DNA from: Dimorphilus gyrociliatus | Taxonomy: Eukaryota > Animalia > Annelida | Assembly: GCA_904063045.1 (NCBI GenBank) | Contig: CAJFCJ010000009.1 | Location: forward strand, 538,942-602,941 | Direction of reading: 5' to 3' | Length of the DNA: 64,000 nt | Translations under genes and position numbers: made by a program | Notes under the pieces: model-generated | What the model saw: the letters and a program-made list of their open reading frames with translations, nothing else | Told to the model about the DNA's origin: nothing | The model's database searches: none | In this document: in pieces, positions 1,962 to 9,300 of the stretch | How positions within the stretch are numbered: the first letter of the stretch is position 1 | Layout: every line of letters starts with the position of its first letter

Positions 1962-3292
1962 TTAAAATGTTATTTATTTCTATTCTCCGAGCCTCTCTTT
2001 CTGTTTTTCTGTATCTCCCTTCGCCCCTTTCTCCCTGTCTCTTTGTCTTTCTCTGCATCTCTCTCTGTCTCTCTGATGAAAGAGAACCTTTCCGATTTAA
2101 TTAACATACTTATTATTGTTTATTAATTAATGCGATATTCTCTATATTCATTATAAAATATAAATGAGAAAAAGTAGAATTGTTTCAACATTGTCCTACA
2201 ATTGAAAGGAAATATAAAAAATAATGCTCTAGGTAGCGAGTCAACGTGCTTCCTTTATACATCAGCTAAAGAGTCATATCTTATATTGTTTGTTTTTTTT
2301 CCTTCTGTAAATATACAATTACAATTAATGAAATAGGAAGTTCGTTAAACAATTTTTTAATAAGGATGCGTAAGAAACCATAGGAGAATTACCAGGAAAT
2401 TTGTCGGGTAAAACCCATTTATAAGTCATATTGTAATATGTCTAATTAATGTAATTTTCAAACTGAGATAAAAGTAGTTGACCAAGTCTCCAACAAACAT
2501 AAACTATTCAGGTGAAACAGTCAGACATCCATTAACACAGGTGACATTTCATTCTCTCTTCACAGCTGATGTCTTTTTTCGTAATTTAGATAAATTAGAA
2601 ACTGAACTAATTGAACAGATGTCAATGAACCTGATTGATATAATTTTTATATATTTGAAAGAAGTAGAAGTTATTCCGTTTTTCGCTTTTCGTTAAATCA
2701 GCACAGTCTTATATTCAGTTTGAAAGTTAATATCTTGGATATTCTTTTCAATGGCCCATTTTCTCCTATCTCTTTTTTTACCCTTTCTTACTTAAAATAT
2801 TGGCTCAATTCTTAATACGTTTCACACCATTCTATAATGGTGTTATCAAGATTAAACATTAAATTAGGTTTAAAAAAAGAGTTTGTAGTTACTGAATGGG
2901 TTACATTTTAGCGTAATAAGGGCTATGAATGGCTATTCTATCTTATTCTCATTTTTTTTAAAAATATACGAAGACTATAAATAAGTCTTTTAGTAAATTT
3001 TTTCCAGAGCTTTAATTTATTACAAGAATGAATGATCAAAGATACTCTTTTCCTTTCTTTTTCATTTATTTAAAAGCTTAAAAGATCTGATTTTTAATAA
3101 TAATTGAAATTTTTTTATGGAATAGAAATACTGGCACAATCCTTTGTATATAAAACTTATCTATAGTTAAGCTTTTTGAAATAATTTCTTTTCCCCATTT
3201 CATATTTTTTTATTTGGAGAAAATCATTTTTCAATAGTTGCAAATCGAAAATAAATATAAAACAAAAGTTATCGATGAATCATGTTTCTCCA

Positions 3293-3311
3293 TCACGTGA
3301 CGATCGATTGG
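3293..3311. promoter_or_regulatory. E-box (TCACGTGA) and CCAAT box upstream of the NAD synthetase gene
   Basis: TCACGTGAC at 3293-3301, followed by ATTGG, about 100 bp upstream of the ATG at 3398. Confidence 0.5.
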
Positions 3312-3397
3312 TGCCAAGCAATATCCTTCGAACGTTCCATAAATACAGAGATATTAAATTGAAGCACAACAACTGAAAATATTAAAAGATTATAAAA

Positions 3398-6300
3398 ATG
3401 GGACGTAAAGTTACTTTAGCAACTTGTACATTGAACCAATGGGCAATGGATTTTGAAGGAAATTACAACAGAATATTAGAAAGTATGTTTTTATTATTGT
3501 ATTATCGCTCAATATTAAGTACTAATAGACTATTTAGCGTGTAATTAATTTAATAATTATAAAAGACTATGTGTCGACAACGTTCTAAATAGCTATTCAT
3601 CGTTCTCTAAATGTGTATATCTGGAAAACTCAGATCCATATTTTATTGATTAGAAAGATATTTAAAAGTCAATATTTAGGTTCATAGAATAAATACTGAT
3701 TTATTCGTTAAACTAGTGAAATGATTGTTTCTTAAGGTATAAAAAAGGCAAAAGAGGCGGGAGCAACGTATCGTCTTGGACCAGAGTTGGAAATTCCGTA
3801 AGAATGTTAATTTTCTCGGTAATCCAAATAATCATACTTTTGTTTATAGTGGTTATGGATGCGCTGATCATTTTTATGAGAGCGATACATTTCTACATTC
3901 TTGGCAGGTTTTAGCCAAGCTCCTAAACTCTCCTGATTGTCAAGACATCATTTGTGATGTTGGAATGTAAGTGAAATATATCTTTATTATATTTAAAGAA
4001 TATTTTTCTTTTTATTCGTCTTTAAGCAAGGAAAACAATGCGGAGAATAATTTAGTAGTTAATTTCCGTTATTGATTGAATTGATTTAGCAGGGGGCCAT
4101 AAACATTATTGGCATATCAAAAATGTTCCTGACAAGCATTTCTCAATTATTTAGAGCAAGTTTTGTATATATTTAAAAGAGAAATCTCTCCAACTTAGTT
4201 CAGATTAAGTTTAATACTAAATGCAGCTACACTAAATCGTATGCTTAGCAGAAATTGTCCTTGTGAAAAACCACTTGCAAGTTAAATTACTATTTCTTGT
4301 AACATTCTATTAGATAATAAGGAATTTGTATTACTATAAGGAATGGTATAATGAGTATTTCGTCAAATTTACGTTCCAAGGAATAAGATTGTTACGCTTA
4401 ATTCGTTTCTAAAGAGAATAGAATTTTCTAAGACATGTTCTTGAAATGGAATACCTAATTGCTTTTTTTTAATGAAAATTTTTTTTTTTGCGATTCCTTC
4501 AATAAAAAATACTTGCACTTCCTCTTAAATAAATATTTTAGCTATAGAATTTACGGTTATTTGATAGGTTTTTACTATTCAATAAGTAAAAAAAAAATTA
4601 AGAATTAGAAGTAATAATAGTAATTTAAATTAAAATAATAAAGTTAAATATGTTGCCCATTCGTAAAAATAGTCATGTTGTCTAATTTTATATAGGTATT
4701 TTTAGAAAGAACTGACATGGAAACAAACTAAACCTCTTGAACAAAAATAATGCTGAAAACAGGCTTATCATTAAAATAGCTAATCCCTACAAATTATTTT
4801 GTCTAGATTAAAAAGGCTATGCGGATTATATATTTGTTTGACAAACTTCACTCTTAAAATTTTATATATATATTTGTCCAGACAAATTACAGGGACTTTT
4901 TTTTATAGCCAAGTCCTTTTTTATTATCACTTTTTACTCATAAGCCTTTTTTTTTAAGTGTATCTTTTATCTTTATTCGAGTCACTCTTAAATTTTTAGC
5001 TGTGCAAAAAAGTATAATAATTTTCTGAAAAAATACGGCTTCTTTTTAATTATACAAACGATTTTTTATCCATAATTATTAATTAGTTTTAGATAATAAA
5101 CTATGGTGTTGCAAGTATAATCTTCTACTTAAATGATTAAAATGGTTGCGTGTAAAAGAAAGTAACTTTAGAAAGACATGTATTTAAAGAATTAGGCGTA
5201 TTGTGAAGCTTGACAAATATCTTTAGTGACTTGTTATCCATCTTTTAATGAGTTGGTATGAGAATAAAAAGTGAGCCCACCCTAAGAATTTCCTCTGGGA
5301 TGAGGGATAAAGTTAACCTTTTATAATTTAGCAAAAGTCTAAAAAAAAATTGTCATCAGTCGTGCTTCCTAACCCAAAGATGACACTGATTGTTTAATAT
5401 GGATATTTTAATTGAAGAGTGACCGCATTTTTATTTAACGAAAAATTACGCTTACGTTCAGTACGTAGACTTTGTTCTACAGTGTAATTTATCCGAAGTA
5501 ATCATTTGCTCCACTTGTACATTCGGCGTACTTGTTATACAGATCCATAAGTTTTTTATAATTTTCATTATCGATTTGCTTCATAGCATTCAGAATGAAA
5601 TCAACAGGTTTTCCTGTAAAAATAATTAGGTTTTCATAATTAATAAGTGTTAATTTTTATATAAGCGCCATCTTCCGTTTCATAGGCCGGAAGGAAAGTA
5701 TATTTTTTTGGCGTGAAAATGTCTTAAGTTTTTATTAAATCCAAATGTTCTACAGGTGTAACTTGAACTGATGATCATGTTTTGATTCTATTGATTTGAT
5801 TTTTCGTTTTCTATATTTCTCAGAGTAAATACATAATAATAATAGTAAAAACCTGTTAATGAGCTCCATTCCTCAACTTTCTTGAGCGGATAAGACCCAC
5901 AAACTGCTAAAATAGCTTTGTCTTCGCTGTAGGCGCTTCCAAAAAGAAAGACGCAAACGACGGCCATGAGGAGAAAAATTCGCATTTTAAACCGAGTTGG
6001 CGTCGCGATCTGAAATGTTGCAATTGTTTTTGTAGAATCAACAGCAATAATCGTTTTTACTTTGACAACAAGGTTGGCACTTTATTAGGGTCACTAGAAA
6101 AGTAATTTGTTTTTTTTCATAAAGTAAAAACTCACATTAATCCATAAATTTATACCTAAATTTTTTACCTAAAACATTTCTCTCAGTGTACTGGAAATCC
6201 CTTTTTTTTATCTATCAGATCTGTGTACTCCTTATTATATTTATTCAATTTTTGCCATAAGCAAATTGTCAATAATGAAAATTGTCATAATGGCTCATTG

Positions 6301-9300
6301 ACTAGAGATATTCTCTATTAATTTTACAAAAAATAGACCGAAGTATCTTACCTGTAGACTGACCAGTTTTACGTACGTTTGACGTCGTCGACGACTTGAT
6401 CGTTACTACTTCGTAGTGTTGTGACGTCTAACTACAGGAGGTGATTTATGCGAAGAAAGCGGGAAATGGCAACGCATTGTTTTGAGATTCTCAGTTTCTT
6501 CGTTTTCAATTTAAGTTTCTCTATTCAATCTTTTTTTTAAACAGGCCAGTAATGCATAAAAATGTTGCGTACAACTGTCGAGTGTATTTTCTCAACAAGT
6601 ATGTATTGTTTTGCACTTTTAGCTTATTTTAAAAAATTTTATTTATCTAGAAAACTTCTCCTAATCCGTCCAAAACTACGATTATGTAATGACGGAAATT
6701 ACAGAGAGGGACGATGGTTTACTCCTTGGATGAAGTTCCGGCAAGTAGAAGATTTTCATTTACCACGGTTAATTCGGGACATTACTGGACAAAGCCTTAT
6801 ATCAATAGGAGACGCTGTTATTTCCACAATTGATACTTGTATAGGAAGTGAAATATGCGAGGAAATGTGGCACACTGCTTCTAGTCATATAGAAATGGGT
6901 TTAGATGGTGTCGAGATATTTACTAATTCAAGTGGAAGTCACCATCAACTGAGGAAGGCCTATATTAGAGTAGACCTCATTAATTCTGCTACATCAAAAG
7001 GTGGTGGTATCTATATGTTTTCAAACCATCAAGGATGTGATGGTGAGAGGGTGTATTATGATGGGTGTTCGATGATATCTATAAATGGGCATACAGTTGC
7101 ACAAGGCTCACAATTTTCTCTTGATGATGTCGTAAGTATTTGTTTTAATTCTTGAGGAATTATGGAAATTGTACTCTTTAAATATGTATATACTTTCCTA
7201 TAAAACAAAGATAAGATTACGTTAGTAAAAATCCAAACTTCTTAACATGAAAAACCCTACGAGCAGTAAAAATCTATGTTACAAATATTTAGAAAATGAG
7301 AACAGAGAGTACATTTTCAAAGGGTGTGACTTTACAAATAAAAAATATATATTCTTCATATCTTTAATGGTATTCGTAACAGAATAATTTTTATCAGCAT
7401 CTTAATGAGTTGCTCGTAATGTCTCTAACGTTTTATATTTCCTAACCATTTAGTTAAGGTGAAATGCAGAAACAGAACTTCTATATTTAGTATATTACAT
7501 GTTATTGTCCGAAGAGACAGACTATTTCGCTCAAAAAAAATTGTCTCTACAACTTTGACTCTTCCCACTCTCAAGTTTTTAAACCTTTATTATTCGTCAG
7601 TTTTATACTCGCACATAACAGACTCTCTCTCCCTTCGGTAAATTGTTCAATCGCATTTCTTATATAAAAGGTGACTTATAAACAAGTCCAGTGAGAATAT
7701 TATGATGACTAATAGGCAAATTCTTACTTTAGATATTCATAATAGAATAGTACTTCATAAATATTATTTTAAGGGATCGGTATTCATATCGACTAGTATT
7801 TTTTAGGATTAAGCTCTCAATCAAAAGTCTAATTTAAATAAGTCTTTTTTTTACCATTCCTTAGGCTTTATATAGATTTACCCTTTTCTTAGTCAAATAA
7901 TGTTCTCAAGAGTAAACAGAAGAGATTCTATAAAGTTTTTTGTTTAAATTTTATCATTTTTAAATTAATCTAATTATATTTTTTATTTTTAGCAAGTCCT
8001 GACTGCTACCCTTGACTTGGAGGATGTTCGAAGCTATAGAAATACTATGAGAAGCCGGAATGAGGCGGTAAAACTATAATAACTTATAAGTAGCCATATC
8101 AAAAGAAAAAATATTTTTCGACAGGCTGCATGTGCATCTCCTTACCCCAGAATTATATGCGACTTTAGCTGTTCTTCTGACGATTTATGTCTGCCGTCGT
8201 ATCAGCCAGTCCAATGGCAGTATCATTTGGCCGAGGAAGAAATTGCACTTGGACCAGCCTGCTGGCTGTGGGATTATTTAAGAAGATCTAGACAAGGAGG
8301 CTACTTCTTGCCGCTGTCAGGTAACAGCAAATGGCAACTGATTAATATTTTCCTTTGTTCACTTACACCCAGCACTATCCATAATGATAAGTACTCGTTT
8401 GAACTAAAACGAAAGTACTTTTCTATGTCTTTCTGCTAATATAGAGATTCAAAATTAAACAATAGGTCTTTGTCTTCTGTAGGAGGAATTGACAGTTCAT
8501 CTACTGCTGCAATAGTTGGTTCTATGTGTCACTTGGTATGCGATGCTGTCAAAAGGGTAAAGACTGTTTCCTCTTATTTTTTCCTCTTAATTGAGTTTTG
8601 CTGGCATATCCTCAAAGGGCAATGAACGTGTGATCGCAGATTCTAGAAATATTGTTGGTGATTCAAACTACATACCTACCGACCCCAAAGAGCTATGCAA
8701 CAGAATTTTTACTACCTGCTATATGGGTAGTGATCAGAGTTCGAAAGACACGAAGAAGCGAGCCTCGGCTCTAGCTGCAGAACTTGGAAGCTATCATTTG
8801 GAAATTAATATTGAAACTGCAGTAAAGGCAGTTATTGGAATATTTACCACTGCTTTTTCGCTAATACCCAAGTTTAGAGCTTACGGGGGTTCAGATAGGG
8901 AAAATTTAGCTTTGCAGAACATTCAAGCAAGGTTGAGAATGGTTCTTGCTTACCTATTTGCACAGCTTTCTTTATGGGCCAGAGGGAAACCAGGAGGCTT
9001 GCTTGTCTTAGGTTCGGCTAATGTCGACGAATGCTTAAGAGGATATATGACCAAATATGATTGCTCCAGTGCTGATATTAATCCTATTGGTGGAATAAGC
9101 AAGACTGATTTAAAGTCATTTATCCGCTACTGTGTCGACCATTTCAAATGGACCAGCTTAAATTCGTAAGTCAACGCTAATATTCTCAAATCTGCAATAA
9201 TCTCTCTATATGAACTAGAAAAGTTTATATATTCATGATAATTTATATAATAGTCATTATTTGTAATTAAAAGTCTTCCAATTTATTTCTATTATTAAAA

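Follow-up and report, generated by a model that had tools for sequence, protein, structure and literature searches.

The window analysed here is a stretch of 64,000 nucleotides (nt) from the miniature worm Dimorphilus gyrociliatus (contig CAJFCJ010000009.1 of assembly GCA_904063045.1, positions 538,942 to 602,941 of the forward strand), and all positions below are counted from its first letter. Within it, the long third intron of NADSYN1 houses a real, spliced and expressed protein-coding gene on the opposite strand. This small gene, which bears the public name DgyrCDS7282, consists of four minus-strand exons, and it and the 5' half of NADSYN1 interleave: its exons 1-3 lie inside NADSYN1 intron 3, and NADSYN1 exons 1-3 lie, on the other strand, inside an intron in the 3' untranslated region (UTR) of the small gene. 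On balance, it is probably lineage-restricted and fast-evolving, and its product is probably a small protein that is secreted and acts intact.

An earlier note on this DNA had described a complete three-exon gene nested in NADSYN1 intron 3. The spliced minus-strand gene stood up to analysis, while the exon count rose to four and the last exon proved to lie outside the intron. Strict nesting would place the whole transcription unit within one host intron, and exon 4 is found at 3372 and below, beyond host exons 1-3. Since it falls outside 3967-6544, the two genes are interleaved rather than strictly nested.

Transcript structure and RNA evidence

Four RNA runs were aligned to the window, all in the form of Logan contigs, which record the presence of a transcript and its joints. 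Two of them, X1 and X3, are marine metatranscriptomes (study P1); X2 is an invertebrate RNA library (P2), and X4 comes from organism A (P3), a relative or a divergent strain. The joint 5853/5613 was found in contigs of all four runs, and hence in three studies, with the X2 contig 100% identical to the window. The joint 6352/6009 was found in a contig of X1. Both skipped parts read CT..AC on the plus strand, that is, as GT..AG introns of the minus strand. These are the two junctions that the earlier note had put forward as a check, naming a lack of spliced minus-strand reads as grounds for giving the gene up; such joints were found, and the gene is therefore real. The splice signals listed there are present as well (donor CTACAG/GTAAGA at 6352/6351 and acceptor TTTCAG/ ending at 6010), and the second intron has its own minus-strand signals, a donor ACAG/GT at 5853/5852 and an acceptor TTTACAG/ ending at 5614. 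The coordinates of all exons and introns are collected in Table 1.

The fourth exon emerged from contigs of X1, X3 and X4, which leave the aligned stretch at 5456 (minus strand GAAC/GTAAGC) with loose ends of 137, 104 and 30 nt, respectively. Its placement is based on the first 30 letters of each loose end, the consensus of which matches the minus strand of the window at 3372-3343 and is unique both in the window and in the genome. A TTTTCAG acceptor ends at 3373, directly before this match. The first letter of exon 4 is 26 nt upstream of the NADSYN1 ATG, which places the exon antisense to the 5' end of that gene. The X4 contig of the small gene ends exactly 30 letters into exon 4, and the X4 contig of NADSYN1 has about 55 letters before the ATG. 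Because an assembly with k=31 breaks at stretches common to two transcripts, these contig breaks suggest that the NADSYN1 5' UTR and exon 4 overlap as RNAs at 3343-3372.

Both ends of the transcript probably differ from those first proposed. Exon 4 probably runs to about 3190, past an AATAAA at 3214-3209, with the poly(A) site judged from this hexamer. Another AATAAA (5430-5435), which had been assigned to the gene in the earlier note, turned out to be intronic in all three informative runs (X1, X3 and X4), and an end at that position is seen in no RNA contig aligned here. This hexamer lies 20 nt into the 3'-UTR intron, and a shorter, unspliced isoform could use it. On the 5' side, the gene had been drawn to 6470; exon 1 is covered by an RNA contig only from 6409, and transcription probably begins near 6410-6420, some 30 nt past a TATA-like ATAAAT at 6444-6449. 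The resulting mRNA would be about 0.55 kb long.

Coding frame and public annotation

The frame comprises 85 codons, with 44 residues encoded by exon 2, 40 by exon 3 and a split codon G/GA (Gly) between them. The 85-residue translation over two coding exons is as it had been described, with the ATG at 5985 and the stop at 5491-5489. This ATG stands in the context TTTAAAATGC, has an A at -3 and is the first ATG of the mRNA, as neither 6470-6352 nor the 24-nt exon 2 leader contains another one before it. According to shuffles of the two exons, an equally long frame that begins at the first ATG and spans both coding exons arises by chance with P of about 8e-4. The proportion of guanine and cytosine (GC) is 0.33-0.47 in the exons (0.45 in exon 2) compared with 0.26-0.28 in the three introns. 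Between the stop codon and the last exon junction there are fewer than 50 nt, a distance at which the usual rule of nonsense-mediated decay would not apply.

A word search with exon 3 against 5.8 billion proteins returned one match, 100% identical: DgyrCDS7282 of Dimorphilus gyrociliatus, a protein of 79 amino acids (aa). It is the same spliced coding sequence (CDS) begun at the second Met and is held, without a function, in NCBI and UniRef. Consequently, the gene is already publicly annotated, and DgyrCDS7282 is named in no paper found in the literature. The first ATG, with its A at -3, would be the one used by scanning ribosomes, and either start would lead to the same mature protein. The public gene model is corrected here in that its start codon is later than the first ATG of the mRNA. 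In the differential-expression table of the genome paper, the level of DgyrG7282, an entry that may be the same gene as DgyrCDS7282, rises by 4.7 log2-fold from late embryos to hatchling females, its mean count being low (baseMean 78).

Divergence in a relative

The contigs of X4 allow the frame to be compared with that of a relative or divergent strain. Eleven coding differences from the window are listed, with no indel and no stop. The replacements are S20C, K35E, Q57K, N60R, K64D, D68N and N71H, and there is a silent codon as well as a silent third base. Nine of the 11 differences fall within 43 nt (codons 57-71; window 5534-5578), five of them being charge-changing replacements, and the last 14 codons and the stop (5486-5535) show none of those on the list. 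About 186 listed coding bases, a very small sample, give a replacement-to-silent ratio of about 1 or higher, which fits either positive selection on the patch or weak constraint. The contigs of X1 and X3 differ from the window by two silent changes only.

These differences suggest that the gene, which is probably restricted to this lineage, evolves fast, its variable patch lying at precursor residues 57-71 and its C-terminus staying constant. A patch that varies beside an end that does not would be a usual pattern among secreted ligands and among proteins of binding, defence or reproduction.

Predicted product

By inspection alone, the N-terminus looks like a signal peptide. Within residues 1-20 there are a single Arg and a hydrophobic core of 13 residues, and A-Y-S (A-x-S) stands before the proposed cut, as is typical of such peptides. 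Removal of this signal peptide of about 20 aa after AYS would leave a predicted helical protein of 65 aa. The mature chain would have a mass of 7.4 kDa and an acidic isoelectric point of 4.9, with eight Lys, no Arg, and Cys at mature positions 9 and 56. AlphaFold2, run on the single sequence, predicts four helices with a mean predicted local distance difference test (pLDDT) score of 68, reaching 81-85 in the centre and low at both ends. The two Cys could tie the first helix to the last. The 65-aa protein would be secreted and act outside the cell intact, uncut at its KK pairs.

Several points weigh against this reading of a secreted, intact protein. The contigs carry no direct information on strand, ends or expression level. 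Signal peptide and secretion are read from the sequence by eye, and the AlphaFold2 model is of moderate confidence and built from one sequence. Four more X4 differences lie within about 30 nt of the piece ends and fall outside the list above. Finally, weak constraint is one of the two conditions that fit the X4 ratio.

A possible neuropeptide or hormone precursor

The product could instead be a C-terminally amidated neuropeptide or hormone precursor, ending in ...DYF-amide after PAM removes the Gly and acting either as the whole 65 aa or as KK-cut fragments. This is unlikely. With neuropeptide and peptide-hormone precursors in general, the small protein shares an N-terminus that looks, by eye, like a signal peptide, the small size and the final Gly, but it lacks conserved basic sites, repeated peptide copies, a family match and a place in the species' list of precursors. 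The terminal Gly to which the earlier note had drawn attention is indeed the last codon before the stop and shows no X4 difference, although as such it amounts to an amide-donor motif only, and a terminal Gly occurs by chance in about one in 15 proteins. In favour of a precursor, the last 14 codons are free of listed X4 differences and the preceding 15 codons carry five replacements. Moreover, long amidated hormones exist, such as those of the crustacean hyperglycaemic hormone family, and amidation of the intact 65-aa chain is possible to judge from its last codon.

Cleavage fares less well. The two KK dibasic sites noted earlier, which are the protein's only basic pairs, are each altered in the X4 transcript (K35E and K64D) and are therefore unlikely to be processing sites; beside KR or RR, KK is in any case a poor site for convertases. 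No likeness to any Pfam neuropeptide family was found. The published set of neuropeptide precursors for D. gyrociliatus was compiled with BLAST and a script that looks for cleavage patterns (PMC7854359); the protein does not appear in it, and its motifs are absent from the precursor FASTA in the supplement of that paper. If the protein is a true signalling molecule, it would add a family missed by motif-based neuropeptide screens.

A possible antisense RNA of NADSYN1

It is quite unlikely that the transcript serves mainly to regulate NADSYN1 as an antisense RNA, with a frame that is incidental or weakly functional, like that of a young de novo gene. The layout lends itself to such a role: the last exon, beginning 26 nt from the ATG, would overlap the 5' end of NADSYN1, the body of the gene crosses NADSYN1 exons 1-3, and the X4 contig breaks would fit a stretch, 3343-3372, common to both transcripts. 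The X4 differences, which are mostly amino-acid-changing, and the lack of relatives anywhere point the same way. Against this stand the low probability of such a frame by chance (about 8e-4), the signal-peptide-like N-terminus, the first ATG in good context and the higher GC content of the coding exons relative to the introns. The frame also remains intact in X4 despite at least 11 substitutions. Furthermore, regulatory and coding roles are mutually compatible.

Very doubtful is a fuller scenario that would join these elements, in which a gene born in the dinophilid NADSYN1 intron encodes a new 65-aa amidated hormone or pheromone with a receptor-binding C-terminus and a positively selected patch at residues 57-71, and exon 4 couples the expression of both genes.

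Homology searches

Searches for relatives of the small secreted protein were made exon by exon, and full-length ones with the public 79-aa protein (P0001). The earlier note had been unable to place the product in any known family, and its position is shared here: no family was detectable in Pfam, PHROGs, PDB sequence or fold searches. Pfam, queried with each exon peptide and with the public protein, gave only a sub-threshold match to AbbA (15-17 bits). PHROGs contained nothing meaningful for the 79-aa protein, and the best match of the PDB sequence search, a bromodomain at E=0.19, is noise. Among the fold searches, Foldseek found nothing below E=7 in the PDB, the ESM Atlas offered feature scores up to 0.79 and TM scores up to 0.51 but no lead, and the VIA wide search reached a best Z of 5.1, to generic unrelated helical pieces; the model searched with is of moderate confidence, so that this miss at the level of fold is a weak one. 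The worm's own genome contains no paralogues, the gene being single-copy, and no contigs encoding exactly this product are on record. No Rfam RNA family was found in 2500-7500.

A phmmer search of 1.84 billion representatives returned the protein itself and 12 matches with E-values from 1e-28 to 8e-4, all of them repeat proteins. These proteins (P0002-P0013) are 494-2586 aa long, match in 4-16 stretches and contain tandem units of two kinds. In addition, most have tail-fibre PHROGs, collagen repeats or, at the C-terminus, an Lcl domain (Lcl_C). One kind of unit is phage tail-fibre-like, 46-53 aa long, with the consensus start S-V-F-G-R-T-G-A-V-V-A; the other is bacterial, with W-S-x-L-x-G-x-P-A-D. 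Against a profile built from 45 units, the worm protein scores only 14.7 bits; none of 20,000 shuffled decoys reached this value, and HMMER puts the per-sequence probability at about 1e-6. In hhalign, the worm protein aligns with the unit profile at 56% probability and P=1e-4, the profile having been chosen after the fact. P0001 has no match to phrog_16348, the PHROG of the phage tail-fibre type of unit, at E<=0.1, whereas the repeat proteins themselves match it at 1e-33 to 1e-55.

The similarity is judged to be an artefact, that is, chance amplified by repeats, because a probability of 1e-6 is expected for the best of very many repeat families and is then multiplied by near-identical copies. 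It is thus scarcely credible that horizontal transfer brought in one unit of a tail-fibre repeat, from a phage or a bacterium, and that this unit was domesticated to give the protein: although the long repeat proteins, with their tail-fibre PHROGs, collagen repeats and Lcl_C, are its only matches in 1.84 billion proteins, and the units align to precursor residues 17-57 (11-51 of P0001), including W-S-S-L-T-G-x-P-x-D-F, one unit scores just 14.7 bits with the post hoc hhalign result beside it, the high totals stem from 5-16 near-identical copies, the alignment includes signal-peptide residues, phrog_16348 is not matched, the worm protein is predicted to be helical and begins with what looks like a typical animal signal peptide, and three spliceosomal introns interrupt its gene. 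The summation of repeats can give very low E-values for a small orphan query, which makes it a trap in orphan-gene searches. As far as an exhaustive sequence search can tell, the product is taxon-restricted, with no homologue outside its lineage.

Comparison with known systems

Taxon-restricted orphan secreted proteins of invertebrates are likewise short and single-copy, have a signal peptide (read by eye in the small protein) and no outside homologue, and change rapidly in amino acid sequence. The small protein is filed under this class, as nothing separates them. Secretoglobins (PF01099) are comparable in having a mature chain of about 65-70 aa, four predicted helices and one Cys near each end, but the small protein has no Pfam or fold match to them, and the likeness is one of type, not of membership. 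Secretoglobins are not known outside mammals.

Opposite-strand genes in host introns have classic animal examples, namely OMG, EVI2A and EVI2B in NF1 and the cuticle protein gene in Drosophila Gart. The locus described here has in common with them a small, independently promoted, opposite-strand gene in an unusually long host intron. It differs in that the 3'-UTR intron of the small gene jumps back over host exons 1-3, and in that the two RNAs probably overlap.

The host gene and neighbouring features

The host is a glutamine-dependent NAD synthetase; its N-terminal exons read like NADSYN1, and a CN_hydrolase domain is present in the exon that follows. The extent of intron 3 given in the earlier note, 3967-6544, is borne out by the NADSYN1 contig of X4, which joins 3966 to 6545. 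At 2578 nt, this intron is about 40 times as long as the median intron of D. gyrociliatus, which is 66 bp (PMC7854359), and its length is exceptional for the species. A lineage-restricted secreted-protein gene that occupies a rare long intron and is interleaved with a housekeeping gene helps to explain why the intron has not shrunk. The value of the locus is modest but real: it is a case with good documentation, from an annelid genome that ranks among the most compact.

Table 1. Positions of the exons, introns and related features of the small gene and of the 5' part of NADSYN1 in the window
Feature	Position	Strand	Details
Small gene, exon 1 (non-coding 5' UTR)	6352..6409	-	58 nt covered; X1 contig 6409-6352 joined to 6009
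Small gene, intron 1	6010..6351	-	342 nt, GT..AG; joint 6009/6352 in X1
Small gene, exon 2	5853..6009	-	24 nt of 5' UTR, then CDS 5985-5853 (44 codons + 1 base)
Signal-peptide-like first 20 codons	5985-5926	-	within exon 2
Small gene, intron 2	5614..5852	-	239 nt, phase 1, GT..AG; joint in X1, X2, X3 and X4
Small gene, exon 3	5456..5613	-	CDS 5613-5492, stop TAA 5491-5489, 33 nt of 3' UTR, GTAAGC donor at 5455
Small gene, intron 3 (in 3' UTR)	3373..5455	-	2083 nt; contains NADSYN1 exons 1-3 and AATAAA 5430-5435
Small gene, exon 4 (non-coding 3' UTR)	3236..3372	-	at least 137 nt; extent estimated from the length of the X1 loose end
NADSYN1, exons 1-3	3398-3482, 3737-3797, 3850-3966	+	from sequence and frame; ATG at 3398
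NADSYN1, exon 4	6545-6598	+	joint 3966/6545 in X4 contig

The NADSYN1 exon after the long intron is just 54 nt long and is followed by a 52-nt GT..AG intron (6599-6650), which is skipped in the X4 contig; the alignment tool reports this intron as 'skips 55 with TAA between'. A palindromic E-box, CACGTG, at 3294-3299 falls within exon 4 of the small gene, some 100 nt upstream of the NADSYN1 ATG, and could be part of the NADSYN1 promoter. Further upstream, at 851-1961 on the plus strand, open frames match the Tetraspanin family (PF00335, E=2.8e-10 and 0.0019), which points to a tetraspanin gene that precedes NADSYN1 on this strand.

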